Origin: Mytilus californianus
Taxonomy: Eukaryota
Assembly: GCF_021869535.1 (NCBI RefSeq)
Contig: NW_026262745.1
Span: 85,064,001 to 85,128,000, forward strand
DNA length: 64,000 nt
Direction: 5' to 3'
The translations under genes were made by a program, and so were the position numbers. The notes under the pieces were generated by a model. The model was not told the origin of the DNA. It saw only the letters and a list, made by a program, of their open reading frames with translations, and ran no database searches. This document shows, piece after piece, positions 1 to 49,648 of this stretch. Every line of letters starts with the position of its first letter. The first letter of the stretch is position 1.

Positions 1-1
1 C

Positions 2-2590
2 ATCAAAATTTTCCAAAATGAATTTGACAGTGGTAAAATTGCCATTTAGACAAGATGTATTCAAGGCTGTCTTCGCGTCTAACGCTTGACTACCACACTT
101 ATCTAATAACCATTCAAGTATATCTAGACTGCCTTTGGTACAAGCATTCATAAATGGTGTCTTCATGTCAATTGTTTTGTCATTAACATTGTCTAGTAAC
201 CACATTGCTAGATTTAGACCGTCTGATCTAAAACAAACGCTACTCATTGCTGTGTTTACATCTATCAATGTTTCATCAATATTTTGTACTAACCATTTAA
301 CTACATCAGCATTACCCTGTGAACACGCTTTGTTCATTCCTGTGTCCATACCCAGTAAAGTATTATTCACTTTTTCAGTTAACAATTGCACTACATCTAA
401 TCTAAGCTGATGGCATGCCTGCCACATAATCACTTTGAATTTTGTATTAGACCAAATCTCTTTCACTTCAACCCGATTTAAGAAAATACTAATCACGTAA
501 AAATAACGATTATGCACAACTTCATCTTCATTAATAACATTATATAATGCTGTTTTAGCGTCGAATAACGTATCCTCAACATTTTCCATTATCCATATGA
601 TAACATCCAGTCTTTGTAATAAACACGCTTTTTGTATTACGGTGTCTAGATCTAGCAAGGAACTATCTACTTTATCTGTCAATAATTGCAGCATGTCCCT
701 ATGATGTTGGAAGCATGAATTGATCATTAATCTTTTCCAAAAAATTATATTTGTTAAAATGTCTTTATCATTTAATTGCTTTAATAAAAATATCACGATG
801 TCCAAATCAACTTCATCATAATATCCTTCATACAAATCCTCTTCATAATCATCAATAACGTTACACATGTTATATAATGTTTTCTTAACGTCAAACAACG
901 TATTGTCAACATTTTCTACAACCCATTTGACAACATCCAGATCTTGTAATAAACACGCTTTTTTTATCACTCGGTCTACATCTAGCAAAGAACTATCTAC
1001 CTTGTCTGTTAATAATTGCAGCATGCCCCTATTACGTTGGAAGCATGAAATCTCCATTAATCTTTTTAATTTAGTTATATCTGATAAAATATCATTATCA
1101 TCTATCTGTTGAAATAAAAGTGTGATGATGTCCAAACAACCTTCATACATATCAGTATCATAATCACAATCATCACCAATTATATCATATAATGATGTTT
1201 TAACGTCAAACAACGTATTGTCAACATTTTCTAATATCCATTTGACAACATCAAATTTTTTAAATAAAAATGCTTCAAATACTACTGTGCCTACATCTAG
1301 CAAAGAACTATCTACCTTGTCTGTTAATAATAGCACCATATCCCTATTACGTCCGAAGCATGAAATACTCATTAATCTGTTTAAATGGGCTATATTTGAT
1401 AAAATGTCTTCATCATCTAATCGTTTCAAAAGAAGTGTGATGATTTCAAAATCAACATCACCATCTTCATCTAGTTCATAGTACTCTAAATCATAATCCC
1501 AATCATTATCAATAAAATAATATAATATTTTTCGAAACTCAAACAACGTAATGTCAGCATTTTCTATTATCCATTTGACAACGTCCCTTTTCTGTGCTAC
1601 AATTGCTTCCAATACTACTGTGTCTACATCTAGCAAAGAACTGTCTACTTTATCTGTTAATAATTGCAGCTTGTCCCTATTACGTTGGAAGCATGAAATG
1701 GTCAATAATCTTTCCAAATAGGTTTTATTTGATGAAATGTCTTCATAATCTAATCGCTTCAATAAAAAGTTGATCATATTAAAATTGCGATAATCATCAT
1801 TTTTTTCATCATCACCAATAGCATAATCTAAGGCTATTTTAACGTCAAACAATGTGTTGTCAATATTTTCTGCTATCCATTGGATAACATTAAAGTTACC
1901 TTCTGAGCACGCTTTATTCATTACTGTGTCAATACCGAGGAAATTGTTATCAACAGTATCTGCCAAGAATTTCATTATTTCCAACTTGCAGAGACTCAAT
2001 GATGTTTTGGTGTGAAGCAATGAATTGTCAACGTTCTCTGCTATCAACCTTACTTTTTCAAAATTGTCATTGAAACACGCATTATTCATTGCTGTTTTCA
2101 TGTCAAGCAACTTATTATCAAAATATTTTACAAAAATTTTGACTATTTCTAATTCTGCATTGTTACAAGCACGGTGGAGAATTTTTTTAATGGTCCCTAT
2201 GTCGAAAAAAGTTTGATCAATATTTTCTAATAAGACCTTAACAACTTCGAGGACTATCTTTTGATAATCGTTACCAAAGAAAGGCTTCAATGCTGCATGC
2301 ATGGCTTTATTCATGTCAAACAATTTATGATCAACGGAGGTAATCAACATGTCAAGTATCTCGAGTCTTCCATAATAACAAGATATGGTAAAAATCCCTC
2401 TCATATCTAATAAATTATGATCGTATTTATCTAACACAAGCTTTGTAATATCTGGCATATTGAATGCACTTGCCTTTTGCAATATATAATTTATTGTTGT
2501 GATATCAAAGGCAGAATTACGAACACTTTGCAAAAGCAGTTTAATCAAATCAGATCCTTCAAAACATTGACATGTATCGATCGATGAGAA
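2..2590 (-). pseudogene. Exon 3, part c: about 863 further codons of ankyrin-like repeats after a frameshift; open to the window edge and not in the ORF track
   Basis: I read every codon in this frame (codon starts 1 mod 3) from 2590 to 2 and found no stop. Translation continues the same repeat grammar (LLDMKTAMNNAC, LFDVKTAL, ACSQGNADVVKWLVQN). Confidence 0.9.
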
Positions 2591-3693
2591 TCATTGGTAA
2601 TTAACAACTTAACAATGGCGAGATTGTTTCCATCTATCGCAATGGCAGTTGCTGTTTGCATATCTAATTGTTTGTGCACAACATTTTGTAGCAAATACTC
2701 TACTACCTTTATTTTCCCTTTTCCTTTACACGCATTATTCAACGCCGATTTTAAATTAAAGTAATTATTCGAGTATGTGAAGAAAGAGGATTGCAGATTT
2801 TCTATTAACCATTGAATTATCTCCAAATTTCTATTTTTCAATGCTTTCCTTGCACAGTCTATGATTTCAGGCAGTACAACAACACTAACAATACGCAATA
2901 GTTGGCCAACAACATTATCCCGGCCTTGTTGACACATTATTACTAAAATGTTCATATCGAATGAGAAAGGTTCGATACTGTCTACTATTAGGGAAATTAC
3001 ATCATGTTTATTACTGTTGCAAGCTTCTAAAATCGCAATGTTGAAGTCAAAAAACGACGAATCTGTGTTTTTTATTAACCATCTTGCTACATTAATGTTT
3101 CCTCCACGACATGATGCATTCAAAGCAGTTTTTACATCGAAAAAGGAGGTAGAATTGTATTTTTGTATCAACCATTGAACGATGTCTATGTTCCCTGTTT
3201 CACAAATTTCACTAATTGCCGTTCGCATATTAAACTTTCCTATATCGACATTTTCACAAAGCCACTGAATAATCTCCTGGTTTTTCGCATTGACATTTGC
3301 GTTAGCTAACTTGTTTGAAAGTTTTATTATGTCTATTAACCATTTAACAACTTCATATCTACCAGAACGACATAAGTCTCCGATTGCACCTGTTAAGTCA
3401 ATGCCAGAAGTGCTCTGATCTTTCTTTAGTAGTGGTAAAACGTTTGTCCAGTTTCTCAAGCAAATTTCAAAAAAAATCTTTTGAAGATCAACGAATTTCA
3501 TATCAATACTTCGGAGCAGTAACATCATCATTTCATCGTTTCTTGGTGGTGTTAAAAGTATGACTTTTGTGAAGTAGCAGTCGTAATCATTCGTTAGTTT
3601 GAAATCGTTTATTATATGCAAAATCAAAATAACTATTTCATTCGTATTTTCTTGGACAACAGCAGACAAAAATGCTGACAAAACAGACGCTTT
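2545..3693 (-). pseudogene. Exon 3, part b: ankyrin-like repeats in frame with the NTPase after the TGA at 3694-3696
   Basis: Reads IVQS*KASVLSAFL in the same frame (3696 and 3681 both 0 mod 3). Repeated FD(V/M)KTALNxAC..G..++V.WL+ units. Confidence 0.85.
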
Positions 3694-5195
3694 TCAACTC
3701 TGAACAATATCGATTTTGCTTTCTCGTTGAAAAATATAACGAGTATGTTCTAACAATGGAACTAATGATTCAAAGAGATGCTTTTGTGTGATAACATGTT
3801 CAAGTAAAGCGGCGGGGAGATAAAAATTTACTGATTCATGATCATCTGGAAGTGCAATCATGGTTGTCATGTCCTTCAGGGGTAATAATCTATGAGCTAC
3901 TTCAATCAAATTTTTAACAAAAGTTATATCATTTTGTCTCATAATTTCTGAATCGCATAAAAGCTGAATTAGATTTTGAGATCTCAGACGATATTCAGTT
4001 TGGAGAATTTCGATTATGCGTTCACAAAGATATGGGTAATACCTGGCAGGAATATTCAAGACTACTTCTCCTTCTTTTTCTTGAAAGCCCTCAAGGCGCA
4101 CCATTTCTCTGATAAAATGAAACGCTAATTTAGATAAAATTAGCACAGGATTTATTCTACTGTATGAAATAAATACACTCTCGAGTACTGTCTGATGTTG
4201 AAATTTGTAGGAATTGGTGTCATATCCTTTTATTAGATATTGACCAATCATTTCATCAATTGCATCGTACAGATAATGTTCTAAAATATTATTTGCACAA
4301 TTATGGTAGCAAGAGGTTATAATTTCGCTCATTTGGTTGAAGTTTATTTGATTTGTATCCAACAAATCTCCATTTAGGAGAACATATACAAGCAGAGAGT
4401 ATTTTATTTTGTCAGAAAATTTCTCTTTGCCAGATTTCCGTAAATTCTCGATCTCTTCTGTCAGACAACTAGATGGGTGTTTGAAGAACGCTTCCCCTAA
4501 TCTAGTAAATTTTCTATTTCCTGTGAAAAGGCAACATGTCTGTGGAAAACCTAGTATTGGCTCAGTTTTTATAATCTGATTTAAAGTAATTAGATTTAGT
4601 TTGACTGTAACTTTGTCGTCTAAAATTACCTCGTCTTTAAAATTTTCTATTTCATTCAGTCCCACTATCTTAAACTTATTAACCTGACAATACCCGACAA
4701 ATAATGCCTTCTTTTCCTCTTCCTTTAATTCGAATTCCTTTGAGCAAATGTCTACTTCGACAAATTTATAAAAAAGTCTATTGGAGGAAAAGACCCAGTT
4801 ACATGACCGTTTAACAATATCTCTAACTGTAAATACTATTTTTGTGTTTCCAATGTTAACACAAGCATTTACCCTATTAAGTATTTCAACATCTGAATTT
4901 TGAGTAAATACATTATTGGTCCTACCAAATATGTCTTCACACAGGATGACGGTCTTAACTTTTGGTAAAAAAATGTCTTCAAAATCTTTCAGGTCTGTTA
5001 ATTTAATGATCTGATAACCTTGCGTTTTACACTGGTGTAGAATTTCTAAACTGTTTCTGCTCTTTCCTGATCCAGCTCGTCCTGTCAATACTAAAACATT
5101 GTTCTCTCTCAGTAACTGTACACAAGATGGGACCACAGATGTCGTTACGAATGTATTTTCCTTTTTGTGATGTTCTATTTCTAGCATGGTTAAAC
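3694..5195 (-). CDS. Coding exon 3, part a: nSTAND3-type STAND NTPase plus winged-helix region, ending at an in-frame TGA
   Basis: Phase-1 acceptor TTTCAAAG|GT TTA ACC ATG matches the exon 2 donor (DEK-G-LTMLEIE). Walker A GRAGSGKS, Walker B-like VILCEDIFG, sensor TVR, HQTV motif. Confidence 0.85.
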
Positions 5196-8100
5196 CTTTG
5201 AAAGATCAGTATTTTAAAGTATTACATATTAAAAGGAAGATGTTAAAATCTGCATTAGTCATTTTTTTTAATTAAATGAGATGTAAGGGTCTGTTAATAG
5301 TATATTTAGGTCAAGCATACCATTTTACTGTAAAACACTTTACATTCCTGAAACCCAAAACTCATCCAAAAAATTCTAGAGTTAAATGGATATAATGAAC
5401 AACTTGGAAAATTATAAATCACATACCTTAAGATCAAATTTACATAATAATGTGTAATATTTAAAAAAAAATATATTAAGGTTATCTGTTTCTTTCTCCC
5501 GAGTATTACAGAAAACATAACGATAAAGATATTTTGAATTCTTTTATGGAATCAGGTTTTGAAACAAGCCCCATCTTCATTTTAAACATAAGTATTTACA
5601 ATCTTCTTGTCACTGATGCAACTGTTGAAATAAACACAAACATACAGGTACACACACTGATATGCACACACATTTGCATCATTACAACTCTATTATAACG
5701 ATTGATTCTTTTTGTCTAGATACATCTAGTTGGTGGCCATGTTCGTACGATACGTCAACATGTCAATTATGATAATAAGTATATGATATGTTCGATTGTT
5801 TTGATAGGTAATATTTCCTTTCAGAAACAAACAGATATGGCACAAACAACGACATACTATAATGATTACTTATGTCAGACTTTGTAATGCCTGTTTTCGT
5901 TTTGAATTTAAACTACTATACTCCTAGATGCAAACCTCAAACATGCATTCGTATGTACTTCATTTGACGAAGAAAATGATCCTACCGGATTAATTTGACT
6001 GCAAAACAAAAACGCCTACTTGTATATTATGACGTTTACTACATTTTATGTTTAAAAAAACACTTAGGAAATAACGGGAAAATACAATAAAGTAATAGCT
6101 AAGGCTCCTGAAATGCCTGAGTGTTCATACATAAACTAATGGTGCAGATTTACTTATGTTTACCGTAAAATTTAAATTAACTGTAGAACAATAAATATGT
6201 TACTGTTGTCCTGCTACACTAAAGCTGATAATAAAACTTCGACTCTTGTAGTCGTTAATTATAAACAGATGATAAATCAAGAATAAAGTACATACCAATG
6301 AGCTTTGATCTCTTGGAAAGACCTAAATGAGAAAAGTATACTGAATTAATCCCTCAACAAAAGCAGTCCTAGGTATAAATTAATGTGTTTTTAATACAAA
6401 ATAAGGCATCTAACATGGGTTAAAACTTTTTACTCAGTCGAAGGAAGTGTTGCGTTCATGCTTTGTGCATTCTTGAAACGGAGAGTCACCTACATAACAT
6501 TGGATTGTAAAACATTTAATTGTACATAATCGTCCAAGGAGTATTGCAATGTTATAACGGGGGAATTCAACTGCGTTTAACGAGGAGAAAAACATGTCCT
6601 CCATAGAAACAAAATGGTATAGAGTGACGTCAGGTTATAAAAACCCATTGTCATACTATTGTAAAAGGATTGAACATGGAAGGAATCTGATAAAAAGTCT
6701 CTTATTGTGAATAATCCAATATCACATTTTGAAAGTAATGTCGAAATTATTGAAACAGTATCTGGTACGGCCATTTCTAGAAAAAGAAAACAAGCTTCAG
6801 GTACTGATAAAGCGACTTGTTTTCGTAAGAGGTGACGAAGCAACCGAAAATGTGGTGGTGCGATGACGTCAATATCAAACGGAAAGTTGTAAGAATAAAG
6901 TTATTAATTCTTTTAAATTCTGATTCGTACGCTTCAGAGAGAGTCAAATAATGAAGAATTATGTCATTACCAAATCTCAGATTATGACCTCCTCTGGACA
7001 GCATATGTTTTTACTATAGAAAAACATCACATATCGTTTCATCTGGGAATCTAATGCACGTGTATGATAGTGTTTAACTCGCAGTGTATATCCAAACTAG
7101 TTACATTCCATGATACATTTATTTTTCCTTAATGTAACCTGTATCATGTTTATGTGTTGTACAACTTATCTTCTGGTGTTCTAACTAGTTTCATTTGAAT
7201 TATCAAAGACCTTATCATTTATTTCATAATAAAGTATATGACAGAATGGAATATTAATATTTTTGGAATGATTTTAATGAATTGGGCGTGTTTTGTGGTC
7301 CTTTTTAATCGAGTGTCAGTTATGACATTTCAACTATATAAACTACACTGCTCCACAATCGTGCCCTTTAATAGTAGACGTGTATCATAAATGCATTGAT
7401 CCACAGTGTATGGTCAAACTCATTAAATTCCATGTAAGTGATACATCTTACTATAACTAACAGTTACCTTCATGATATTTTTTTATTAGATGATAAAAAT
7501 TTCTCTAAATATGATACTTCGACAATGACCTTAGGTAACCGACTTTTATTTTAAATATAAAGCAAATATAAACAGCTATAACTATCCTTTCCTTGATTAA
7601 GTTCATTTTGTTTTACAACGAAAACTCTTCACAAAAATTTATGACAAAATCGACAATTTTTTCCCCCGGTTACAACTTTTTTGCTATGATGTTCCTTTTG
7701 TCACATCGTACGCTGTTCATATATCCCAATTTATCTATTTTGAAGTTTTTTTGTAGTCACGTTCTAGATTTAAATGAACGTAGTTGGTTAATGTATTACT
7801 GGTGAATTATTAGGTGAAAGATTTCGTTACCACAAAATTAATAATCATTAACCTTTACTCACCTATTAATACAAAAAGTAAAAAGATACAAAAAATTGGT
7901 TTTGATAAATTAAGACAAAACTATATAAACATGATAAATATAAATATGTTATTACTCTATTGTTTTAAGCATTGCACGATGTCATGCTTTTTCAAAGACT
8001 GTTAATGCCATTGTGTGTGTACTGATTGATATTTTAGTCTGGGAAACCTGATTTAAGCATGTTATGTATTAGTTATAATTGGCTTTGATAAACGTTTATT

Positions 8101-8738
8101 AACAGCGAGAATTCAAAGATCAGTAATTTGTGTGTTTAGTCTTTTTTAGTTTTTTTGTGTTTTGTGTTGATATGATGAGTCAAGCCAATCACAACTGATT
8201 TTTCTCAGTTTTTTTTCGAATATTAGGCTAAACATCAAGTGTCAAATATCTCTGGCATGTTCAAAACAAAAACAAATCAAGGAAATATACAAAATGTAGG
8301 TCCTGTAATATTGGTTGACCAGGATGAAGGGCGGGTAATTTTGACTACCAAAGCACAATGAGAATATATTAGATTGGAACATAAGTTTTGTCGCCTTGCA
8401 ACAGGCCAAGCCAAATACGAACCAATAAAGAGTTTTTTTAAAGATACTCCCTCTTCACAAGATATTGGATATCACGTAAGCATTCTGACTGGACGTGGCT
8501 TCGTAATTGTACATAACGCACAGCGAAACAGACGTTCCATTTTTCCTAGGGTTTTACTGCAGATATGTAGGCGAATAAATGTGACCATATTTCTATTCCT
8601 AAGCCAACGTTGGGTACAAAGTTTTCATGAAACTTATGTGAAAGTATAGCCTCTATGCTGAAATACAGTAAAATTTTAATCTTATGCTCCTAATTATTGA
8701 TCCATTTTTATTAAATCGGAGGAACTTAAGTTTATAAA

Positions 8739-11700
8739 TGTTAACGGCAATACGTGAAATTAGACATTACGCTTAATTCCTAGGTAATAAACTAACGCCT
8801 AGGCTGATGATGATTATTCAATCTATTGCCGAACATAATTCGGTAATTTATTCTTGATATAAAGTAGTTTCTTAATTATATTCCAAATATTAATATACAT
8901 TCATTTAACAGATCTTCAAATTTTAGATATTTTCATATTCAAAAATGAATTAACTCATACTTTTTTGTGGTATCACAAAAAGTAAAAAAAGATTTAAAAA
9001 AAAGTGATTGTATCCAACGAAAAACAGGGAGGGTGAGGTCCTATATATTAATTATGATAATAATTGTTTTTTTTTACACTTCACTAGTCGAGCTGGTCTG
9101 ATCTGGTCAAAAGTAGACAACATTAATAAGATATGATTTTTTTGCTCACACCATGTTTCCAGTGTTTTAATTGGATAAGTAAATTTTCTTTGTTAAAATT
9201 TTTGTTAAAAACCCCAAGGCCATCTTGTCTTTTTAACTTCATTATCTGGATTATTAGCATTAAGTGACAGCATGTCTATTAAGGACAAATTTCTTGAATC
9301 TTTGCGGTATAAATTCGAATCTGGGGAAAAACAAGAAACATATACCATAGAGAAATGTACCATGATCTTTTGGCAAAGATTTAACTTTTAGAATCATCAG
9401 AAAAGAAGGCAACTAAAGATTGCTACAATTTAAAAAGGTATGATATTTTTACCATTGGAGGTTTTAAGAGGTTGATAACAAAGTCAACGAGAATGATGAG
9501 GGAAATTGCAGAATTTTATGTCTTTCTAGAGGAACTCTATAGTATTTTGGACATAAAGAAACAGGTCATGGCAGCAGAGACCGCATGATTAAATATGAAT
9601 ATGCTAATATTTCCCGGAATTCTATTGAACTATTTCATTCACTTTTTGAAAATTGTAATATGAAAAAAAAAAAACATATAGGGAAGGGAGTAGTAGTCAA
9701 GCCCATTTTATCTAAAGACTTTAACAGAAGAGGACAAGTTGAATTGATGGATTACTATAGATTTCTTATGGTTTTCTAAAATCACCTTACAAAATTTTGT
9801 AACATTAAAGCTCTTACGTCAAAATGTGCCTTAGAGGTGGCTTTTAATCTTAGTGATATTTTCACAATTTTTGGTACGCCTCATATACTGCAAAGTGACA
9901 ATGGTCGGGAATTCACAGCTTTTGTCATATCCGAGTTAAAATTAATGTGGCCAGAACTAGTTATCGTTCATGGGAAGCCGAGACATCCCCAATCACAGGG
10001 TAATATTGAGCAATCGAATGGAGATATCCATGACATGCTTACTGCATGGACGAGGGACAATTAATCAACAGTGGTCAATTGGCATCAAGTTCGTCCATAT
10101 TCAAAAGAATTCAGATAAACAAAAAGGCATTGGACAATCACCCTATAAAGCCTTTGTTGGTAAATGTGCAACTATTGGATTAACATCAGAAACCAAAATT
10201 TCGAAAGATTATATATTCAAAACGACTCTTTAATCTTGGAGGGAGCCTTAACTAAATCATTACAGTACTTCCATGTAATGTATAACGGATAAAAAACGAG
10301 AATCTTACCAGAAGCTTTAGAACAAAATATCTGCATCCTTTCGTTCAGCATGACATAAATCTGACCGTTAGTTTTGAGTTGTTTCACGTTTACAATTTCG
10401 GGCCTTTTATAGCTTAATATGAGAAAAAGGTTTTCGTTGAAGGCCGTATGGTGACCTATAGGTCTAAACTTATATATCAGTCTGCCTCTGGCGGAGAGTT
10501 GTCTCATTGGCAAGCATACCACATCTTCATATTTTTATATTGAGTTTAAGTGGAACGATCTTTATGAACACAAACGTCATTATCACAAAATTGTACGTAA
10601 ATTTGAAAAAAAAGTTTTATTTCAGTACGGCTTTATAAATATTTCTAATTACACAAAATTACATGTTTTTAAGCTGATTTTTTATTTAATCTGTTTTTCA
10701 GGATGTCTTAATTAAAGTGCTATGTATGTAAAAAAGGATACCTCGGGAGCTCATATGACTAGTAAATGTGACAAACACATTAATGTTATATGTGGAACTA
10801 CTCGTAGTGAAGACGGGTACGGTTCGAAGGTGTTAAGTCGCAACTTTACGATTGATACCAACAGATTTCGCCATCGTTCTGGAGCTATGGACAGTCAACT
10901 GAAGCAGACAAACACTATAATAGCAAGGAGCAAAACAGAACTAGAGACACCAGAAGTTTGTCAAACAGTGGCCGTTCCAATACCTATGTTTAATCCAGGG
11001 AAGGGCGACAGTAGAAATTTACTCGGCCGAGTCATTGAGGTAAGATATTTTATCAATAGTTTGACTGCATCATTTAATATGTCATGTATATTGAATACAA
11101 AACAGAAAAAAAGAGTAAAGGTGAATATGTTTATGTAATCAGAGAGGAATTTAGGAGGGGTATGGGCCCAGGCTTCCCCTATGGAGCTACAAAAATGATA
11201 AATGCAAAGACGTTATAAGTATCATTCAAAACATTGACTTGTCAGGCCCCTCTCCCTCGTTTTGAAAAATCCATGATCTGCACCTGGGGAAAATCAGATG
11301 TGGATCAATGCCACAAAGACAGTACAACGTCACCTTTGCTATACGGATTTGTTTTGTATTTCAATGAAAATAATTGCAAATAACTAATTATTCCGACTCT
11401 CACAAATATTTTTTTATCGATATTTTAATGAAAATACTCAAACTGCCTTCTGTAAGCAAAAATTAATTCTAGAAGAGGAAATCAATTGTGAAACAAATTT
11501 AAGTGTACGTGAGGCAGCCCCTTCAGTCAATGTCCGGGGGGTCAAGGATTTTTCCATAGTGCTTGTAAATCCAAATGTTTTAGTGACAGGTGCAAATGCG
11601 AGTTTTATTTGATGAGTTTTAATATCAATAACATATTTTATCAGTGATCATTTCCGGTAGTTGACATTTTAAAACTCAGTTCTTATAATGTTATTATATA

Positions 11701-11929
11701 ACAAAGCTATTTTTATTTAAATGAATAAATGTCTTTCATTTACTTGCATTCATATTTTAGGTACAATGTATAAGGATTAATGTCTGCACACATTTTTCAG
11801 GTTTTAAGATTAAATCCTAGGATTTAAAGTAATGCGTAACATCATTTAGGCAATAGACTTACTGCCTAGGCGTTAGCTTATTGTCTAGGATTTAAGCTTA
11901 ATGCCTAATTTCACTTATTGCCGCTAACG
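8739..11929 (+). mobile_element. Degenerate Ginger2/Tdd-like DNA transposon (KRBA2/SCAND3-type integrase) inside intron 2
   Basis: ~65-bp imperfect TIRs (TGTTAACGGCAATACGTGAAATTAG at 8739; inverse ending ...TATTGCCGCTAACG at 11929). Flanks TAAA/TATA. Fragments of H2C2 (HKETGHGSRDRM), GQVELMDY, LQSDNGREF, PQSQGNIE, PIP..GKGDSRNL and a C-terminal CKSKC..RCKC; many stops and frameshifts. Confidence 0.8.
10372..10540 (+). repeat. Fragment of an abundant bivalve interspersed repeat nested in the Ginger element
   Basis: Ends in GAGAGTTGTCTCATTGGCAAGCATACCACATCTTC; the same motif recurs near 17940, 19085, 19280(-), 41850(-) and 54960(-). Confidence 0.7.
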
Positions 11930-12351
11930 TATACAAAGTAAAATAGTTAAATAGACGATATCATTTTTACTGGAGCTTACTAAGTCAGCTTGGTTGTTTA
12001 CTAAAATTTATTCGAAATCCAAAATAAAATAATTTAATTCAAAATAAGATAGATTTGTCACGAATGCCATTCAGACAACTTTAAGCAGAAGGCAACAGGG
12101 CAAAAAAATATAAACAACTTCAAGTGTCAGCTGTTCGGTCGTCAATAATGCGCCAAATGTTGACGGTAAAGTTATTTATGAATAGTCCCAGATTAATACA
12201 AAAGTGTAACATGTGATTCAACTCAAGCGAGGAAACCAAATTTAGCATGTGTCTCGTAAGTTTTTGAAATATGTTAAACATTTCTGCTGGCAAGAGATAT
12301 AATTTCAACTTTCCGTTTAAACAACAATGTGCATTCATAAAATATAAATAC

Positions 12352-12754
12352 CCTTTTCATCTATGCATTTCTCTACTATTTTTGGTATGCTATTTGCAAG
12401 TTCTTCAACATTTTTCGAAATCATTCCTACTGTATTTTCAACTGTATCCAAACGCGTGTCCATATTTATTTTAAAATCTCCAATTGACTCTACAACGGTA
12501 TCAATTCGCTGTTCTACTTTTTGTGATTTATCTTTACATTGTCTTGCTAATTTAACCGTATAATGCTGGACAGTTCTCTGCTGTCTGCGACTTTGCATGT
12601 AATATTTGTCAAGTTCACGGGGAATGCGAATTTTGACTTCATTGGCAACTGCTTCAACTGTTTGTTCATTTGCCAGTTTAGCCATTTTTTTTGAAAAATC
12701 TTTTCCAAGTTTTCCTACAGATGCCTTTACCTCTTTACAACAAATTTCAACATT
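12352..12754 (-). CDS. Coding exon 2: coiled-coil linker
   Basis: Acceptor TTACAG|AAT at 12754 (phase 0, matches exon 1). Open frame NVEICCKEV...VEKCIDEK with heptad-like pattern. Phase-1 donor AAG G|GTATTT at 12352/12351. Confidence 0.8.
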
Positions 12755-13424
12755 CTGTAAGATATAAAGTATAAAAATGCAGAAGTGTTTTTTTTATATA
12801 TCAAACATATAAAACATTAATGTAAAAGATGTAAAAAAAACTGTCACAATGTATGTTTTTCACAAAATTTTAGTATGATAAATAAAATAAATAACATTCC
12901 GAAAAATATGACAAAAAATTAGTGTGTCGCTAGGGTTAATTATCACTGGTTTTCACTTTTTTTATAAAGCATAGTCATTGACAACGTCTTGGTGACAGGC
13001 TTTTGTGTTTTATGTCATACTAGTGAATCAAAAATTTCTTTCATCGGAGAAATGTTTTACTCGAATGAGAAATCACGGTATTTTATTGCATCAAAAATTA
13101 AACTTTATTCATTTCTCTTTTTACAAACATTGTGTAATCAACACATGATTAATGTGTTTTGCTATTTAGAGCATTTGGTGTTGATGGCTGATATTATGTA
13201 TTTTTTTTCTTTTATATTTGATTCAAAAACTGACGATTTCAAGCTTGATTTAATGTATAGTAACAATCTACTGTATACGTTTTTTTTTATTTCGTCCAAG
13301 ATTTCTTATTGTTATTGTTTCGATGTGTTACTGTCTCGTTCATGTATATCAGACACTCTCCTCCTTTCACATTCTTTATAGAATAACTAATCCAAGAATT
13401 CAAATACAGAAAAATATTAAACGA

Positions 13425-13484
13425 GTGACCGAACAACATATCAATTGCGAGTGCATGATTTAATTATAGGTGTTGTTCGGTCAC
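13425..13484. repeat. Inverted repeat/hairpin in intron 1
   Basis: GTGACCGAACAACA (13425-13438) and TGTTGTTCGGTCAC (13471-13484) are perfect 14-bp arms, with imperfect extension outward. Confidence 0.8.
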
Positions 13485-13772
13485 GAGTTGAACATTTTTC
13501 GATATTTTGAATTGGTTATTCTTTTTATTAAATTGACCATGGACTTATTAATGAAAAATAAAGTAAAAAAATGAAATGGAACAACATCTTTTTTTCTACA
13601 TATTTTAACTGTTATGATGGATAGTCATCAACAAAGTCTGGACAGCACCCATTCTTGTATGCCGTCAGGGGAGTGAAATTATTAGATTTATTTCACATGA
13701 AATCATCGGTTTTCATTTCACTGGGAAATCAAGATAATTAATCATTGTAATAATGACAAGTATCATACTTAC

Positions 13773-14771
13773 ATCTTTTATTTCATTCGCATAACGAAGA
13801 TGGTCTAAAAGGGAATTCTGATACTGGAGACATAACGTTTTATCTAATGTCCTTTTCTGTAAATCTTGAAGACTCTGTTTTACTTCACCTACATTTCCAC
13901 ATACGGATGCTATTGCCGTCAGGTTATTTTCTATTTCATAGAAAACTTGTTTGTAATCTGCATCAGACATTCTTGCTTCTTGAACATGACCGTATTTTAT
14001 GTTTCGTATTTCAGCTAGATCTGTCACACTTTTCCGCAATGGACAACAGTACTGAAGAATTATTCCTTGTAAGTTTAAATCTAAATGATGAATACAAATC
14101 CATGGTGTGGCCGATACAGAACATATACTGGTCGTTCCCTTATATGAACGTTTTCTGTCGTTTGCACAAGGTAATAAAAGAGACGAAAACATCTTGTTCC
14201 ATTCTAATTGATTGATCTGAGGTCGATCACATGGAAATACGAAACCTAGTGGACACTGACAGCAATTGGTATTATGATGCATGAGGTGGTATATAGTATG
14301 CTTGTTTGCGTTCAGGAAATCTTCCAGAGTTGTTCGTTGGAATGTTAAGCAGCTGTACCAAAAGACCTCATGACAAAAGTTTGTAAGGATACATCGTGCC
14401 AACGATATATCTAGCACATTCGTTGATATTCTCGTTTGTGCTAAACTACAACATACTGGTGGCAGTGTTCTAAGTTTCACAATACGGCCATGACAGGTTA
14501 ATTTGGGTGATAATTTGTCATATAAAAGTTCTAGCTGGGCTGGATATATAACACGAACTGATGGTAAAATATAAGAATGAACACACTGACAGCATTTACC
14601 TCTATTGTAACATAAATGGTAAGCTTCATGTCGGTTTTTATTGAGAAATTGTTCAAATGTTAAGCTTTTGTTCTGAAGATCTAAATCAACCAATGCAATC
14701 AAAGATGTCTTCGTATGATCGACAATTAAAATGGCATTCTTTAAAAAGTTTTCTTGCTCCTTCTGTGTCAT
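13773..14771 (-). CDS. Coding exon 1 of HEPN-coiled coil-nSTAND3-ankyrin gene: DZIP3-like HEPN domain with duplicated Cys/His-rich module
   Basis: Acceptor TTAACAG before 14780; ATG at 14771 (MTQKEQENFLKNAIL). HEPN motif R-N-I-K-Y-G-H at 14006-13986, preceded by LDISL..IL.N.C. Phase-0 donor GAT|GTAAGT at 13773/13772. 333 codons. Confidence 0.8.
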
Positions 14772-14899
14772 TTTTCTCACCTGTTAAAATAAACACTTTT
14801 GTAAAAGCTTTCGTATAATTTATATATAGGTACATTTTCTTTTCAAAATTTCTCCTGTGAAGTCATTTTTAAAAGTATTTGAATCTTAATATCAATTAA

Positions 14900-15426
14900 T
14901 CTAATATCTATTATGGCTTCTGCAAAAAATGGATACAAATCATCTTTATTTACAAATTCTCTCTATCTATAATGGTTTCTGCAAAAAATGGATTCAAATC
15001 ATCTTTCAGGGGCAAAAACTTCCCTAGGCAGTCAATTGACAATTTTTGCTAAGTTGATCAACTCAAATATCTGTTTTTGCTGCTTATTTTGTTCACCGAT
15101 CTTTTTAAATCCTGTTTTTGGTTCTGGTGTTGGTTTGGTTTATGAGCATGATGAGATATAAGCCAAAAACTGCATTTAACTCTGTATGTTCCTTTTTATT
15201 TAAACAGCGGCCTTGTTGGTTGGCGGATCCGATCCCCGGATACCATTTTATTCTAGATGTCACAAAAAAAAAACATCCAGATAAGGGTTAATAATATTTT
15301 GCCTAATAGTTTCAGAGGATAAGATTTTTTTTATAAAAGTTTACGAAGACTGACAGACAGAAGGACGACGACGAGAAGAACCAAGTAATGAAAAAAGCTC
15401 ACATGGTCTTTAGACCAGATGAGCTC
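14900..15426 (+). mobile_element. HINE-like (Helentron-associated) non-autonomous element remnant
   Basis: ~60-bp internal direct repeat (CTGCAAAAAATGGAT.CAAATCATCTTT), GAC(A/G) microsatellite, 3' hairpin AGCTCA..TGGTCT TT AGACCA..TGAGCT at 15396-15425. Confidence 0.6.
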
Positions 15427-15849
15427 AATAGCAAAACAAATAACTAACAAAAATACTAAAGTCGCAAAGTGCCAGTCTGAGAATAGTTGCGTTTTCCAAG
15501 ACAGTGCAAGTATCAACTTATAAAATATGATTATATCTCAAATCTTTTAAACGAAAAACGAAAATGTTATTACAAAGTATAACTAGTACTGAATATGCTT
15601 TAAATAGGTATACCGTATAATGGTAATTAAAATCAAACTGTTTAATTTTTTGTATAAAAAGAACTATAATTATAGATAAATTTAAATGAAATTTACACTA
15701 GTTCGGCTAATTTAAGTAAACAAATATACTTGTTCATGTATCTTTCACATGTTTCAAGGGAGCTGATATTTTTGTATTCCGATAAACCTGATATAGTGGC
15801 AAAAAATGGCATTGATTGGAATCACAATAGTTTTACAAATTTACAAATA

Positions 15850-16090
15850 TATGAAGGATTCTGGTACTGAGATGACCGATTATGTCAAGTTCGAAGTATG
15901 AGTCGTCTAAAATAAGGCAGAGGAAGCCTAGTATCTTGTTTCCTTAATGTCTAGTATATTAATGGAATCCGAACAGAAAAGTTTGGATTGATAACGCAGA
16001 GAACATCATCAACCATGACAATATATCTCAATGTGAAATTAAATACAATATGGCTTCTTTGATCTTCTTGTTTTTGACAACAGACATTTC
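15850..16090 (-). pseudogene. Penelope-like element reverse transcriptase fragment
   Basis: Degenerate translation VKNKKIKEA...RYI..DDVL..INP...DIKET...ELDIIGHLSTRI matches the FRYIDDVLSxNN/IYPxELEIKET pattern I recall for bivalve PLE RTs. Confidence 0.6.
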
Positions 16091-22178: not shown

Positions 22179-22272
22179 ATGTCCAGTGAACAGGAATGTT
22201 GGAAACGGCTGTCGGAGTTCAACGTTAATCGTGAAACAGTGGTCGCTTTGTTGAAGGACGAGAATTATACCG
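22179..22272 (+). CDS. Putative exon 1 of a large DDE transposase
   Basis: ATG at 22179 (MSSEQECWKRLSEFNVNRETVVALLKDENYT). Phase-1 donor G|GTTAGT matches the phase-1 acceptor TTTCAG|AT at 23212, giving NYT-D-GWSLEK. Confidence 0.6.
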
Positions 22273-23211
22273 GTTAGTTCTCATATTTAATGCTTTTAAC
22301 TTTTTTTAAGCTTTAGAAATTAGGAAAATAAAAGAATTTGAATAACGATAAAGCAAATAAATTGGGGCAATAGGGGGTGGGGCATAGATATAAATGTAAG
22401 TTCATCGTGAAAAAGGAACCGATATAGGGAAGTTTCAATGAGACTTAAGTGTCAGGTCAATAAACAAAGGGTTCTGGTTCATTTTTTAGCAAAGATACTA
22501 ATAATGTTATAGTTTATCGGAAGCTTGTCACTGATTATAAGATAATTTCTAAAATTTAAACCTAGATCATGCACATGTTACTTTAATATACCTATCTTTA
22601 GGTAGAGGAAATTCCTTACATAAATATGTTTCAAATTTAGCAACGGATATCCAATCCACACTTGAACAGGGTGTTTTTATGTTAATTTTTACATAAAATT
22701 AAAAAAAAATAATACTGCATCATTTTAATAAATGTATGAATCATGTTCCATGGCATTAGAACCTTTTCTTTGTGGTCCCTTCTTTGTGTTTTTCAGCTTA
22801 ATGGATATTTAGAATTGTTCGAACATCTAGAATGTCAGCAAATTTGGATGATGTAGCCTCTAATAGATGTTGTATTGCTGGATGATGAAACTATATGAGT
22901 GAACTCATTGCTTGACAAGTCAATATATGATAATGCCATACCATCGTAGAAATAGAAACCATACTTATCTCTTACCATCACCAACCAATGATCATGATGT
23001 CATATTATTTTCACCATCGCTGGACGATGACAATTTAGACCATGGTATATTTGTAACACGTACCTGATGAAATAATAGGTGAGGTATTTTAAACAGTAGA
23101 ATGTTTAACAAATGGGCACATATGTGGGGTATATGTTCATGAGACAGCAACAGATTAACTGGCAAAGTTTTTAATATACTTGTTTATTTTTGGGTACGAT
23201 TATTATTTCAG

Positions 23212-26200
23212 ATGGTTGGTCGTTAGAGAAATTAAAGAGCCCAATTTGGAAAGAATTTTATTTCTGGGATGCAGTCATTAAAGTTGTTGAAGAAGAAGAA
23301 GAAATGTCAATTAAAGAGAACTTACCAATAGCTTTTAAGAACTTTGATATTTTAATTACTTCTGTGTCATCTTTTGTAAGAAAAATTAGAAACAGAATGG
23401 CTCTGATTTTAAAACGCATTGATGTTACTTTAGGTTATGATGTAGTTTTTGGAAATGAAATTTTAGTGAAGTAGGGCCCTATTGTATGAAATATGGTATT
23501 TCATTACAATGGTTAAAGAACCCCTCTAAGTTGGAAGGTATTTTGAATTTACCAATTGGTTTAATTGTAGAGTTACGAAAACTCAGACTCCGACACAATT
23601 TCACTTTTAAAGATTTTTCTGTTTGGATAAAATTAATGTTGGGTCTCGATTATTGTCCTGATGTCGGTTTTTTGAGGAGACAAATGGAAAGTTTTTATAA
23701 AAGGCAGCTAGCTCTATCTAAAAACAGTAAAATAGATCAAGACATGTACTTGGATAGTATATATGTACCCCCCCCCAAAACCAAATATAATGCTACAGGG
23801 AAAAATGAAGGTGAAGGCCTTCAACAAAGGCGTCCTTGTTTAAACACTGTAGATGGAGAGAAATGTATGTTGAAAAAGAATGTACAAAATCTTGAAAACA
23901 AATTGAAAATTGCTAGGCATGCAAGAATGAATGCAAATTTAAAATTAAATGAATTAAAGAAGAGCAATGTGAAACTGAATAAAAAATATGCTACATGCTG
24001 TATAAAACTGTCCAACTTTTCTACAAGAAATGTAAATAAAAAGCTAAAGCGGAGGCAAAAGAAAATACAGTTTCTTCAGTCAGAAAATAGCAAACACATT
24101 ACAGAAAAAAAATTAATAAAACAGAAGTCAGAAATAAGCAAACAAATTCATAAACAAACATCATCACTATTGAAATATTACCGCGACAAGTATAGAAATT
24201 TGAAAAAAGCTAAAGTCACTCAAAATTTAACACAAAAAACATGCAACAAGGAAAACATTGAGGTTTCTTCACTTAGAGAGAAAGTTTCATATTTAGAAAA
24301 TGAAAATTTTATTCTCAAAGATGAATTGGAAGAACTTTCACAATCAAAAATGGTCACTACATTTCATGAAGGTAAATACACAGATGATGTACGGGAGGTG
24401 TATGCTACATTGTTATCTATGAATGTAGGCGTGAAAAACATAGAAAATGTCATGAAAACAGTTTTAGAAAAACTTGGAGGTTTAAAAGTAGAAAGGCTTC
24501 CCAAAAAAACCTTTGCAGAATATATGATGATTGAAGCTAAGGCATTAGCTCAAATTCAAGCTGCAGAAGCTATGTTAAATAGTAATTTTAATACGTTACA
24601 TACAGATGGGACAAAACGTATGGGTGGGGAATTTGGGGGGCTTCAAGTTGGTACCGATTCCGGGCAACTCTCTTTAGGTATTTCGGAACTTGTGAGTGGC
24701 AATACCGAAAGCTTTTTAAAAATGATTGACCAAATTTTAAGTGATATGGGTAGTTTATTAGAAACTGATTAGGATATAGCTGTAAAGAAGGCAAAACTAC
24801 TTTTGTCAGTCAAAAATTTAATGACAGATCGTCATATTGTAAATACCTGTTTGAAAAATTGTTTAGAAAAAATGCGTTTTGAGTGTATACCGGAAGATGG
24901 GGATACACCGGAGAAAGTTAGAAAAAAAGTTGCTACATTAAATGGTTCTAAATGTAATTTGCATGTTATTGTAAAGTTTGCTTCCCAGGCAGAAATTGGC
25001 CTTAAACAATGGGAAAAAAATATTTCGAATTTAGATAATGTTGAAGATAATAATGTTAATTTTACTTATAATCAGTCAACAACTGATTTTATTAGAGCTT
25101 GCTGCAAACTTTGTGTACCAGGTGCTGATGAAAAGTCTGGTTACGGTTCATTGTTTCGAACATTTTTGAGTGATAATAACATTGATCTTAAGTTGACCAC
25201 TTTTCACGGTCATCGTATTAATTTGCTTTTTGCTATGGGTGCATCTGTGTTTTTTCACAAAGATAATATTTATGAATTTATTGATTTGTATTTTGAAAAA
25301 GAGAATAGACATAATTTATTAAAAGCTGTTGCTAATTATGTTAAAAATCCAATGTATTTGGATGGTTGTCGAGCTTTTGGAATAGTTGACAAGTTATTTA
25401 CTGGTCCTTTGTGGCGTATTATAGAAAATGCAGATCATATCTTAGATTTAAATCAGGTGTGGGAACAATTTAAAGGGTTTTTAGAGATTTATTCTCAAGA
25501 TGCTACTGATTTAGTACAAGGAAAAATATTGTATAAAAACTATACTAATATTGATGAAATTTTTGGTTGTTTATTTGCTGTTGAAGACGAAGAACACAAC
25601 ATTCTTACTACTGAAGCTCTTCAAATTATTTTATTAAACTTTCAGTTCATTCTAGAGAGACAGTTAAGTGACTGTCTTCCTGGAGGAATATTAAATGAAA
25701 AAACTGATGGGATTGATATAAATTTAAGAGAACAAAGCAAATCAGTTGCTACTACCAATATTATTTCGGAAAGAGATTTTGCAAATTTAGACAGGCTTCA
25801 AAGGGAAAAACCAAATGCCAATTTAATTGCACTGGAAGGTATTATTTTGTTTGCTAACAACAAAACAGTTAAGTGGTTGAATAATTTAGAAAGTGAAAAA
25901 AAATCTGAATATTTTAAAATAGCAAGACAACGTACACCAGAGATCATTAAACAGTTTAAAGAAAGAAAGATTGAAATAAAAAATCAACATTTATTATTAC
26001 TTAAGAAAAGAGAGGCAGATAAATTAAAAAAACAATTGCAAAAGCAGCAAGAAATTGAAAAAATTTCAAAAGACATTCAGAACATAGGTGGTCTTTGGCA
26101 AAATATTGAAGACATTAATAAATTTTTAGTTAACTTAACTCAAAATGAAAAGATTGAAGCGGTAAAAACTCAACTTAAGTTTAGGAAAAAAGTTTTACAC

Positions 26201-26890
26201 ATGAATGTTGAAGATAAAACACTTTTACAATTTTCTTCTAATAATATTTCATTTTCTTTAGCAGAGCTTATTTCTAATTTGAAAGTTCTTATACATTTGA
26301 ATATTAATGTGAACAATGCACAATCTGGAACCAAAGATGCATGTATTATTTTTTGTATTAAATCAAAAGAAGAAAGGGAGCAAATTATGGAAAAACAAAG
26401 AGAACTCATTTGTATAAAGCTCAATGAAATAAAAATTAAACAGAACCATTCAGTCTGTGACCCAGTACAGAAAAAACCAAGAAAATCAAACAGTAATAAA
26501 GCTAATTATCAGAGTCAAAATCATGATAATGTAGAAGAAACTGATTTTGTTGTTAGCAAACCTTCAGAAACATATACTCCAAAGTCCATAGTTTTGAAAG
26601 CTGGACAGTATGTAGCTGTAGCATATATTGATACCTGGCATCCAGGTCAAATTTTATCTGTTAAAAATGATTTACTGGTTCAGGTAAAAATTTTGTGTCC
26701 ATCCCAAAATATGGGCAATTTGTTTAAATGGCCACAAAAAGATGACATTAGTGTTGTGGAAAATATTTTTATTTTCTGTTCAGATTTCGAAGTTAACGCA
26801 AAAGATTCAGGTGGAAGAACTTGGGTTTTAACAAATTATGATACTATTTGTTCTGAATATAAGAAATATTACAATACCTATTTTGTCTAG
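23212..26890 (+). pseudogene. Unclassified DDE/RNase H-fold transposase (about 1257 aa reconstructed) with coiled coil and C-terminal Tudor/SH3-like domain; one frameshift, one in-frame TAG
   Basis: HTDGT (D at 24605), MTDRH (D at 24827), CNLH (24953), TNIISERDF (E at 25769). 1-nt frameshift near 23459-23471; in-frame TAG at 24770-24772 (ETD*DIAVK). C-terminal YVAVAY..WHPGQI..V..KWPQKDD. Confidence 0.75.
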
Positions 26891-27699: not shown

Positions 27700-28200
27700 T
27701 ACCTTCAAATGGGAGCCATTTTGGATCATTCAAAACCTGATACCTTGTATTAAAACAAACAATTTGATACCAACATTGCAAAAATCAGTTGAGAAATGAC
27801 TGAGTATTGATGAAAAATGTTTAATCGAAACAGAAAAACTCCGAAATGGGAGCCATTTTGAATCAAAATTTCTGCCATTTTGAGTTGTATTGTCACAATT
27901 CATTCCAAAATTGGTACCTTGTGTTAAGACAAACAATTTGATACCAGCATTGCAAAAATCAGTCAAAAAAATGACAGAGTAATATGACAAAAAGCATTTA
28001 ATCGGGATAGAAAATCTAAAAAACGGGAGCCATTTGGAATCAAAATGGCTACCAATTTGAGCTGGATTGTCCCAATACAATAAAAAATTGGTACCTTGTA
28101 TCGAGACAAACAATTTGATACCAGCATTACAAAAATCGGTCAAGAAATATGAGAGTAGGACTAAAAAATGTATAAATTTCATTCAAAAGTTATGAAATTG
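27700..28200. repeat. About 177-bp tandem repeat, 3 copies
   Basis: ACAAACAATTTGATACC recurs at ~27755, 27929 and 28106; GGGAGCCATTT recurs with similar period. Confidence 0.85.
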
Positions 28201-47566: not shown

Positions 47567-49648
47567 TTAATTACCATCATTTAACGAAGTGCCACAAATT
47601 TGAAATCCATTCGGGACATTTGGATGATTTGTTGGTGACTCATTTATCATCATCCCCATACCATTGGTATTGTGTAAATCTATATGACAATGAAAAAACC
47701 ATACTCCTGGGTTATCGGCCTTAAATCTAATGACAACGTAACCACCAGTTGGAACGATAATTGAATCTTTTTGAGGTGGATTATTCCAATTAAGAAAGGG
47801 ATGAGATCCGTTTGACCATGAGTTGTTTCGCCATTTTGCATAAGAACAAAATATTTTCGGGTCATTGCAAATTAAATCTTGATTGTCCTGACCTCCATTT
47901 TGAACAAGCCTGCCTGAATTTTTATCGTAGTTACCAAATGCCATTTTCATGACATAAAACGAGTGTCCATGCAAATGTATCGGATGAGACCAACCAGAAC
48001 CATTTCCAATATTAGTCAACACAAACTGGTATATCTTGTCTTTATTTGGACTATGTAATGTTACAGCATAAGTGCATTGACAAATAGTGGTTTCATTACA
48101 AGCATCACAGTTGTAGTCTACTGTATCGGGATGTTCGTATGCACCAACTGATGGCGGTTGAAACTGGTGACCATTCACTGACCCTGGTGTGTATCCTTTA
48201 TCGCCAGGGAATGCAAAATTAAAAAAGTGTTCAATTGCATCGCCTTCTACATCCTCTGTGTGGGAATTAGGGTCTGCTGATCTGACATCATTCAATGAGA
48301 GACATCTTCGATTTTCAGCTGCAGGATAATACGCAAATGGACAATTAAAAACTGTTCACGTTGTTAAACAGACTTCCTCTTTGGCCTTTGCTGGATTTAG
48401 ATTTATTTTGTTTTGCGAACTGTTATAAAAGATAATTGCTTCGGCAACATGATATTGATTTCTTTGTTTGGCTTCAACTTCTAATGTTTCGGCAACTAGT
48501 AAGTACGTTCCTGGAGTTTGGTTAGCAACCATTAAAAAATCGATCCTTTCACCAGGATGGATTATGAAGGATTCAACTGGTTCCTTTTCTATTTCAAAAC
48601 CATCTGATGCTACTATATATATTGATTGGTGTTGCTGTACAAAAACCCGAAATGGATATAGAGTAGCTGCACTAATTACTCGGAATCTATAAGTCTGATT
48701 ACTTTGTACTACAAATCTTGTAAGTGGAGAGCCATTGGTTTGGTTGTTTGTAAGATAAAAACGCCCTCGACCATTGATAAGACCGGAATGGAATTGAAAT
48801 CTACTGTACATGGCACCAGATAAGTCTGACGTTGTGTTATATAGACGTCCTGTGTTCATGTCGTAATCACCTACCAGCATTTTCTGGTACAGAACATCAG
48901 CATCGTCGTTATGATTCCAGTCTTGTATAGCTACAACAAATACATTGCTTCCTTCTTGGGGCTGAGAAATATTTTGACCACGCATTGGAAGAATAATCAG
49001 CGGTCCATACAGACCCATTGTCCTTTGATCCCCGATATGGGCATGGTAAAAACTGGTCCCAAATGGTTTTCCTTTAAACTGGTATGTGAAATTTTGTCCT
49101 GGGAGTATAGGACATTGCGAAACGAAGGCTACCCCATCTGACCAAGGTGTATTTTTCTGTTGCATACCATGCCAGTGAATGGTTACAGCATCCGTATGCA
49201 ACAAGTTACGAACGTGTACAATTATATCTTGATATTCATACGCAGTGATTGCAGGTCCAGGAAATCGTCCATTTAATAATATAACGATTTTCGAGTGATT
49301 TCCATCAGCTAAAACAAATGTGTCTTCTTTTTGTTGATCGTATGTCTGCCCAGTATGATAGTTAACAGCCCTTCCATTTAATGGCTTTAACAGTATTGCC
49401 TGTGTTGAATTGGGTCCTTTGTAAATCATACTAAGTTTATGGTCTACAGTCAGAAAGCATTCACAAATTAAGTCGGTCTCTCTACATGTTCCTTCTTTAC
49501 AAGCAGTTCCATTTTTTTGAAGTTGATCGAATAAATCTTTGTCTGTCATTTCTGATGTTGAAATATCCACAAATACAATAACAGTAAAGAAAAAGCAAAT
49601 ATGTCTGAAAACAAAAGAATAATAATTAGTGTGTATCATCAAAAACAT
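47567..49648 (-). pseudogene. Intronless secreted multicopper oxidase (laccase-like), 693 codons including one in-frame TGA at 48356-48358
   Basis: The two listed ORFs share a frame (EEVCLTT*TVFNCPFAYYP). Copper motifs TIHWHG, FYHAH, HPIHLHGH and WFFHCHIDLHNTNGM (axial Met) all present; hydrophobic N-terminus. Confidence 0.9.

Follow-up and report, generated by a model that had tools for sequence, protein, structure and literature searches.

The stretch of DNA analysed here (the window) comprises 64,000 nucleotides (nt) of the mussel Mytilus californianus (contig NW_026262745.1, positions 85,064,001 to 85,128,000) and carries on its minus strand an NLR-like gene, which encodes a DZIP3-like HEPN head with the motif RNIKYGH, a helical linker, a STAND NTPase of the nSTAND3 family and ankyrin repeats, in this order. 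The coding sequence is spread over at least four exons, one of them a micro-exon of 27 nt, and the 2,208 codons inside the window are stop-free apart from a TGA at 3694-3696. The G+C content of the surrounding DNA is about 31%, and long open frames are therefore not expected to arise by chance. The locus is a real gene and a further member of an already known HEPN-STAND-ankyrin family in mussels; we hold its identity and the state of its alleles with high confidence. For comparison, a paralogous locus of M. galloprovincialis (L001; UYJE01009914.1, 9992-25184) contains at least six open reading frames (ORFs), and its annotation divides it into five genes. The features of the gene within the window are as follows.

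13773..14771, minus strand: coding exon 1, 333 codons from the ATG, DZIP3-like HEPN head; defined by its ORF and the donor G/gtaagt (the slash marks the exon boundary)
13986..14006, minus strand: position of the HEPN R-x4-6-H motif (RNIKYGH; R256-N257-x4-H262, Rx5H)
12755..13772, minus strand: intron 1, GT..AG, phase 0; dinucleotides at 13772-13771 and 12756-12755
12352..12754, minus strand: coding exon 2, 403 nt, charged helical linker; a conserved block in comparison with L001
6296..6322, minus strand: micro-exon, 27 nt, in frame, found in a transcript contig of the public run X7; AG at 6324-6323, GT at 6295-6294
1..5195, minus strand: last exon within the window (exon 3), nSTAND3 NTPase module followed by the ankyrin array; passes the window edge at position 1
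4690..5151, minus strand: nSTAND3 P-loop domain (Pfam PF20720)
5059-5082, minus strand: Walker A motif GRAGSGKS
4933-4947, minus strand: Walker B motif ILCED (ILCEDIFG at 4924-4947)
4819-4833, minus strand: conserved arginine after strand 4, in FTVRD
2..3693, minus strand: ankyrin-repeat array, about 1,215 amino acids (aa) in two frames; Ank_2, Ank_3, Ank_4 and Ank_5
3694..3696, minus strand: in-frame TGA of the window allele, TGT (Cys) in other individuals
2565..2566, minus strand: here the window allele lacks 22 nt, which causes a frameshift
13713-14780, 12335-12685, 3694-5187 and 2545-3681, minus strand: long ORFs of the ORF listing

The minus-strand frame is also open from 2500 to 2 and continues past the window edge. 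An original prediction, made from the same DNA, had bounded the gene at a GTG (14780); the closest relatives begin with MTQKEQENF, and the start codon is therefore the ATG at 14771. The motifs RNIKYGH, GRAGSGKS and CEDIFG that it had named are all present in the translation, and the more than 1200 aa of repeats that it had claimed correspond to the array listed above; its putative coiled coil corresponds to the charged helical linker of exon 2. Its domain order and NLR-like layout, with an effector head, a STAND NTPase and a repeat array, are backed by Pfam matches, motif conservation and two structure models. The description as one frame of more than 2190 codons, on the other hand, does not hold, since the frame is broken by the in-frame TGA and by the frameshift near 2565. 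Upstream of the gene, a block at 14941-15996 has counterparts of 83-85% identity ahead of the head exon in the loci L001 and L002, at a different distance in each; it may be a shared promoter, an exon of the 5' untranslated region, or a repeat.

Splicing of the gene can be followed from its signals and from one public run. Intron 1 has the donor G/gtaagt after 13773 and the acceptor ..acag/ before 12754 (phase 0), while exon 2 ends with the donor G/gtattt after 12352 and exon 3 is preceded by the acceptor ..caaag/ before 5195 (phase 1; dinucleotides 12351-12350 and 5197-5196). Three public runs were compared over 2001-6500: X1 (DNA), X4 (DNA, from another study) and X7, which is taken as RNA because of a spliced contig. 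This contig, record 18 of X7 (913 nt), aligns with 4771-5193 and 6294-6323 in turn and passes on into exon 2, its tail being the exact reverse complement of the 3' end of that exon (..GATGAAAAG). Read depth of X7 is present over exon 3 and absent from intronic positions 5301-6200, as in RNA-derived data; in this run, the gene is hence transcribed and spliced. The GT-AG sites and the phases, 0 and then 1, that had been predicted are thus present, but the direct join of 12352 to 5195 is not what the transcript contains: the sole transcript runs from exon 2 through 6322-6296 to 5195, which weakens the earlier gene model.

The micro-exon keeps the frame and inserts the basic residues LSKRSKLIG directly ahead of the NTPase; its skipping would preserve the frame too. 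The block around it is the best-conserved stretch in comparison with L001 (87.6% identity over 137 nt), and L001 retains 26 of the 27 micro-exon nucleotides together with both splice sites. A peptide resembling that of the micro-exon precedes the NTPase in the Mytilus gene models P0155 and P0065. Some public gene models of relatives lack the micro-exon; one is P0001, the annotated model of L001, in whose DNA the micro-exon is retained.

The N-terminal head was assigned by profile, by conservation and by modelled structure. Among 51 homologues of the head, 40 match HEPN_DZIP3 (PF18738), with a best E-value of 5.7e-13, and R256, N257 and H262 are each conserved in at least 90% of the 51 aligned sequences. 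The AlphaFold (AF2) model of the head is confident, with a predicted local distance difference test (pLDDT) value of 91.9 and a predicted template-modelling score (pTM) of 0.89. HEPN_DZIP3 families of molluscs and cnidarians account for nearly all of its closest ESM Atlas clusters, at a template-modelling (TM) score of 0.5-0.58; NACHT-LRR and Roc-COR proteins are found among them. A comparison with 48,161 PDB representatives placed 11 HEPN proteins among the top 40 matches, with Z-scores of 5.6-7.7; the top matches include Csm6 (Z 7.7), the HEPN-containing N-terminus of Roquin, AF_0298, Swt1, sacsin, Cas13 and AbiF. The model thus has the all-helical bundle expected of a HEPN fold. The original prediction had made its case depend on this fold, and the AF2 model and the Atlas neighbours agree with it.

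Three observations weigh against the assignment of the head. Its own HEPN_DZIP3 match (residues 249-312, E 5.4e-6) covers the C-terminal half of the profile only and scores 26.7 bits, just below the gathering cut-off of 27.0. All fold matches of the head to PDB entries lie at Z below 8, which is indecisive alone for helical bundles, and when the head model was compared with PDB structures by Foldseek, nothing reached E<=0.001. At the level of sequence, neither phmmer nor the 51-sequence profile found anything for the head among PDB sequences. BLASTP reveals a duplication within the head (E 4e-11), and both copies carry the pattern H-x3-H-x7-CC-x-C, at residues 48-63 and 158-173, where it is invariant or near-invariant in the 51 relatives. 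The two modules are possibly zinc-binding inserts.

The NTPase is assigned to nSTAND3. PF20720 is matched with 87.1 bits (cut-off 27.2, E 1.3e-24) over profile positions 1-152 of 155, and G42, G44, K45, D88 (invariant) and R125 are conserved across 14 relatives, which also keep the FQH motif of the presumed winged helix. The structure model of this part is of medium quality (pLDDT 79), and Foldseek returned 77 PDB matches at E<=0.001, with E-values down to 8e-7. Those at a probability of 1.00 comprise NLRP14, NLRP3, EfAvs5, SAMD9, NLRC4, NOD2, ZAR1, Dark and Apaf-1, with plant resistosomes among them. In the model, the nucleotide-binding domain, the helical domain and the winged helix are arranged as in NLR, Apaf-1 and Avs proteins. 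No NACHT domain was matched in Pfam at E<=0.01, nSTAND3 being the only NTPase family found, and searches of PDB sequences with this piece (phmmer and profile) gave only chance-level matches to RNase J. The protein is therefore not an NLR in the strict sense of NACHT plus LRR, since its repeats are ankyrin repeats and not LRRs. Both pieces of the array, 2548-3693 and 2-2500, match ankyrin families in Pfam, and TRF detected a tandem duplication of 333 bp (111 aa) at 533-1774, with 3.8 copies and 76% matches.

The two lesions that interrupt the frame were compared between the window and the three public runs.

X1 (DNA): plus-strand 3694 is A, which gives TGT (Cys); 22 extra bases behind 2565
X7 (RNA): plus-strand 3694 is A, which gives TGT (Cys); without a contig over 2451-2750
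X4 (DNA, another study): 3694 as in the window (TGA); 2565 as in the window, with an identical contig over 2086-2678

Two haplotypes are present: one that is broken at both sites, in the assembly and in X4, and one that is unbroken at both, in X1; the transcript of X7 has the Cys codon. Since 22 equals 3 x 7 + 1, the extra bases of X1 bring translation into the very frame that stays open further downstream. The change of frame near 2565 falls between two recognisable ankyrin helices. The spliced window allele terminates at codon 977 and, as read from its letters, would code for at most 976 aa, that is head, linker and NTPase without the ankyrin array. X4 may be the assembled animal itself. Selenocysteine incorporation or readthrough at the TGA is ruled out, as other individuals read TGT at this position. 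In addition, X4 contains a second, divergent contig at 4676-5462, with 34 differences and four gaps in 787 nt; its changes include the acceptor region of exon 3 (5195, 5200), and it stems from a third haplotype or else from a closely related paralogue.

Stop and frameshift could be errors of the assembly, the gene being intact in the sequenced animal. The frameshift adjoins a TTTT run, and other runs carry the unbroken letters. A clean 22-nt indel together with a base substitution is unlike a homopolymer slip, however, and the short-read contigs of X4 reproduce both lesions exactly; even if X4 should be the assembled animal, the letters are confirmed by a second type of data. An assembly error as the source of the lesions is hence unlikely, and we give it hardly any weight. 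It is less far-fetched, but still improbable, that the locus is a decaying pseudogene without present function, as many copies of the family are. The window allele has both a stop and a frameshift, X4 carries the same two lesions, and the M. galloprovincialis paralogue L001 is split into its six or more ORFs in a similar way. This explanation has to contend with the X1 DNA, which is unbroken at both sites, with the spliced X7 transcript and its Cys codon, with the lack of any further stop in the 2,208 codons within the window, and with intact catalytic and Walker motifs. The window thus holds a broken allele of a gene that is unbroken at both sites elsewhere, and the allele pair could be exploited as a naturally occurring knockout in association or challenge work.

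A search with exon 1 among 1.84 billion representative sequences returned 191 relatives at E<=0.001, and the named relatives of the head all belong to Mytilus (M. galloprovincialis, M. edulis, M. trossulus and M. coruscus). The gene belongs to a Mytilus-specific expansion of NLR-like genes. The closest head is that of P0185 from M. coruscus, with 92% aa identity; at its locus, exon 2 is only 79.5% identical, and no matching exon 3 was found within 10 kb downstream. In UniProt, the Mytilus relatives bear the name 'Novel STAND NTPase 3 domain-containing protein', and their UniProt and NCBI annotation consists of domain names only. The head also occurs on proteins of other build: a Mytilus paralogue (P0054) combines the same head type with a Death domain before nSTAND3 and with ankyrin repeats, and the same head type is found on a protein with WWE and PARP domains (P0111) and in a cluster of XIAP-like proteins with BIR and RING domains (P0130). 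Its presence in Death-nSTAND3-ankyrin, WWE-PARP and BIR/RING proteins identifies the head as a shuffled module. The original prediction had set cleavage of RNA against signalling through a death-fold domain; this contrast is too sharp, given that P0054 joins a HEPN head to a Death domain.

How such a receptor might work can be sketched by analogy with NLR and Avs proteins. In the intact allele, the ankyrin array would hold the NTPase off until a ligand is bound; nucleotide exchange in the STAND module would then lead to oligomerisation, which would bring HEPN heads together and form composite R-x4-6-H sites. An active HEPN RNase requires a pair of adjacent R-x4-6-H motifs, so that heads clustered in this way would cut RNA, by which a virus would be blocked or the cell killed. 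We put forward this ligand-triggered activation of a HEPN RNase as a tentative mechanism, with somewhat more doubt than belief.

The main rival to the RNase reading is a non-catalytic head, serving as an RNA-binding or protein-docking module, in which case the oligomerised receptor would signal via partner proteins. Such a role would fit the occurrence of the head on proteins with other outputs (P0054, P0111 and P0130) and the presence of the two conserved Cys/His modules, which do not belong to a minimal HEPN domain. Human DZIP3, moreover, is known as an RNA-binding ubiquitin ligase and not as an RNase. Less easily reconciled with a non-catalytic head is the retention of the R, N and H of R-x4-6-H in at least 90% of 51 diverged homologues, as is expected of a catalytic site, and the motif is likewise kept in 194 of 202 DZIP3-HEPN proteins of the pearl oyster (PMC9646362). 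A non-catalytic head appears unlikely to us, but it deserves serious consideration.

Taken as a whole, the explanation that we favour, namely a member of a Mytilus-specific NLR-like expansion with HEPN head, linker, nSTAND3 NTPase and long ankyrin array that acts by the mechanism sketched above, is moderately probable. Further points to be set against it concern the gene model, the alleles and the mechanism. The join between exon 1 and exon 2 (13773/12754) is predicted from splice signals, from exon-shaped conservation and from the same join in the gene models P0001 and P0185; the RNA nature of X7 follows from its spliced contig only. Because of its stop and frameshift, the window allele cannot make the full protein; the contigs of X7 leave 2451-2750 uncovered, and the expressed allele is seen to be intact at the Cys codon only. 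The array extends past the window edge, and the C-terminus thus lies outside the window. In the literature searched, neither an endoribonuclease assay of any DZIP3-like HEPN domain nor a test of ligand-triggered oligomerisation and RNase activation was found.

The locus contributes a corrected gene model with a conserved micro-exon, evidence of transcription and splicing, and a natural pair of alleles. To the question of RNA cleavage it adds little by itself, as the architecture has already been catalogued. If the proposed mechanism were true, it would describe an animal NLR-like receptor with direct RNA cleavage as its output, and bacterial Avs/STAND defence, RNase L and the immune-gene expansions of invertebrates would become linked. 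More speculatively, and with considerable doubt, the nSTAND3-ankyrin proteins of mussels might be working animal counterparts of Avs5-type sensors that have been rewired to a HEPN RNase, where a ligand bound to the fast-evolving array would trigger a filament or ring and RNA cleavage, and where intact and null alleles, like the pair described above, would be kept side by side in mussel populations because an active receptor is costly.

Outside this gene, four further regions of the window were noted.

22179-26890, plus strand: adjacent ORFs 23486-24772 (428 aa) and 24803-26890 (695 aa), without a Pfam match at E<=0.001
27730-28182, minus strand: 150-aa ORF built from roughly three internal repeats (..FLTDFCNAGIKLFV..), more probably tandemly repeated DNA than a gene
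47567-49648, minus strand: multicopper oxidase (laccase-like) gene in two adjacent ORFs, with Cu-oxidase_3 and Cu-oxidase in 48356-49648 and Cu-oxidase_2 in 47567-48295
52215-53624, minus strand: 469-aa ORF with DUF4371 (E 3.7e-25), a domain that we take to be typical of domesticated or active relatives of hAT/ZBED-type transposases

Among known systems, RNase L resembles the mussel gene in combining an ankyrin ligand sensor with an RNase of the HEPN superfamily, as is proposed here. The HEPN-superfamily RNase of RNase L, of the KEN family entered in Table 1 of PMC3710099, is activated on ligand-induced dimerisation. The two proteins have no detectable sequence relationship, and they differ in build: RNase L carries its ankyrin repeats at the N-terminus, in reverse order to the mussel protein, and has a pseudokinase switch and a KEN-type HEPN domain, where the mussel gene has a STAND NTPase and a DZIP3-like head.

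The bacterial Avs5 (AVAST type 5) proteins, composed of SIR2, nSTAND3 and TPR, Sel1 or PPR repeats, are closer with respect to the NTPase, as the NTPase family of Avs5 is nSTAND3 (bioRxiv 10.1101/2025.07.08.663546) and the layout of effector, STAND module and helical repeats is common to both. The filament structures of EfAvs5 and AVAST5 gave the highest TM-scores by query for the mussel NTPase (0.37-0.38). PADLOC matched none of its Avs models and returned only PDC-S73 (E 4e-13) and a weak RecD-like match. Avs5 is bacterial and has SIR2, an NADase, as effector, whereas the mussel gene is animal and has a HEPN head and another type of repeat.

The nearest counterparts are found in bivalves and cnidarians. 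Anantharaman et al. (2013) described the HEPN domain of DZIP3/hRUL138 in fusion with ankyrin, CARD, NACHT, Death and LRR domains in animals, reported DZIP3-HEPN expansions in Nematostella and oyster, and proposed a role for RNA degradation in defence (PMC3710099). The pearl oyster has more than 50 HEPN-NACHT proteins with strong haplotype variation (Takeuchi et al. 2022; PMC9646362), and NLRs with HEPN heads are known from corals (Noel et al. 2023; PMC10236652). For the exact combination of DZIP3-HEPN, nSTAND3 and a long ankyrin array, no describing paper was found in the literature searched. The original prediction, which knew of no functional description of this architecture, overrated the novelty, as DZIP3-HEPN fusions had been reported in PMC3710099 and PMC9646362. 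The bivalve and cnidarian proteins and that of the mussel are alike in their N-terminal head with RN..H, their central STAND NTPase and their C-terminal repeats, and the genes are alike in their lineage-specific expansion and in their haplotype and presence/absence variation. They differ in the NTPase, which is NACHT in the bivalve and cnidarian proteins (with LRR, TPR, WD40 or ankyrin repeats) and nSTAND3 (PF20720) in the mussel gene. The latter is further set apart from these relatives by its unusually long ankyrin array of more than 1,200 aa and by the duplicated Cys/His module in its head.

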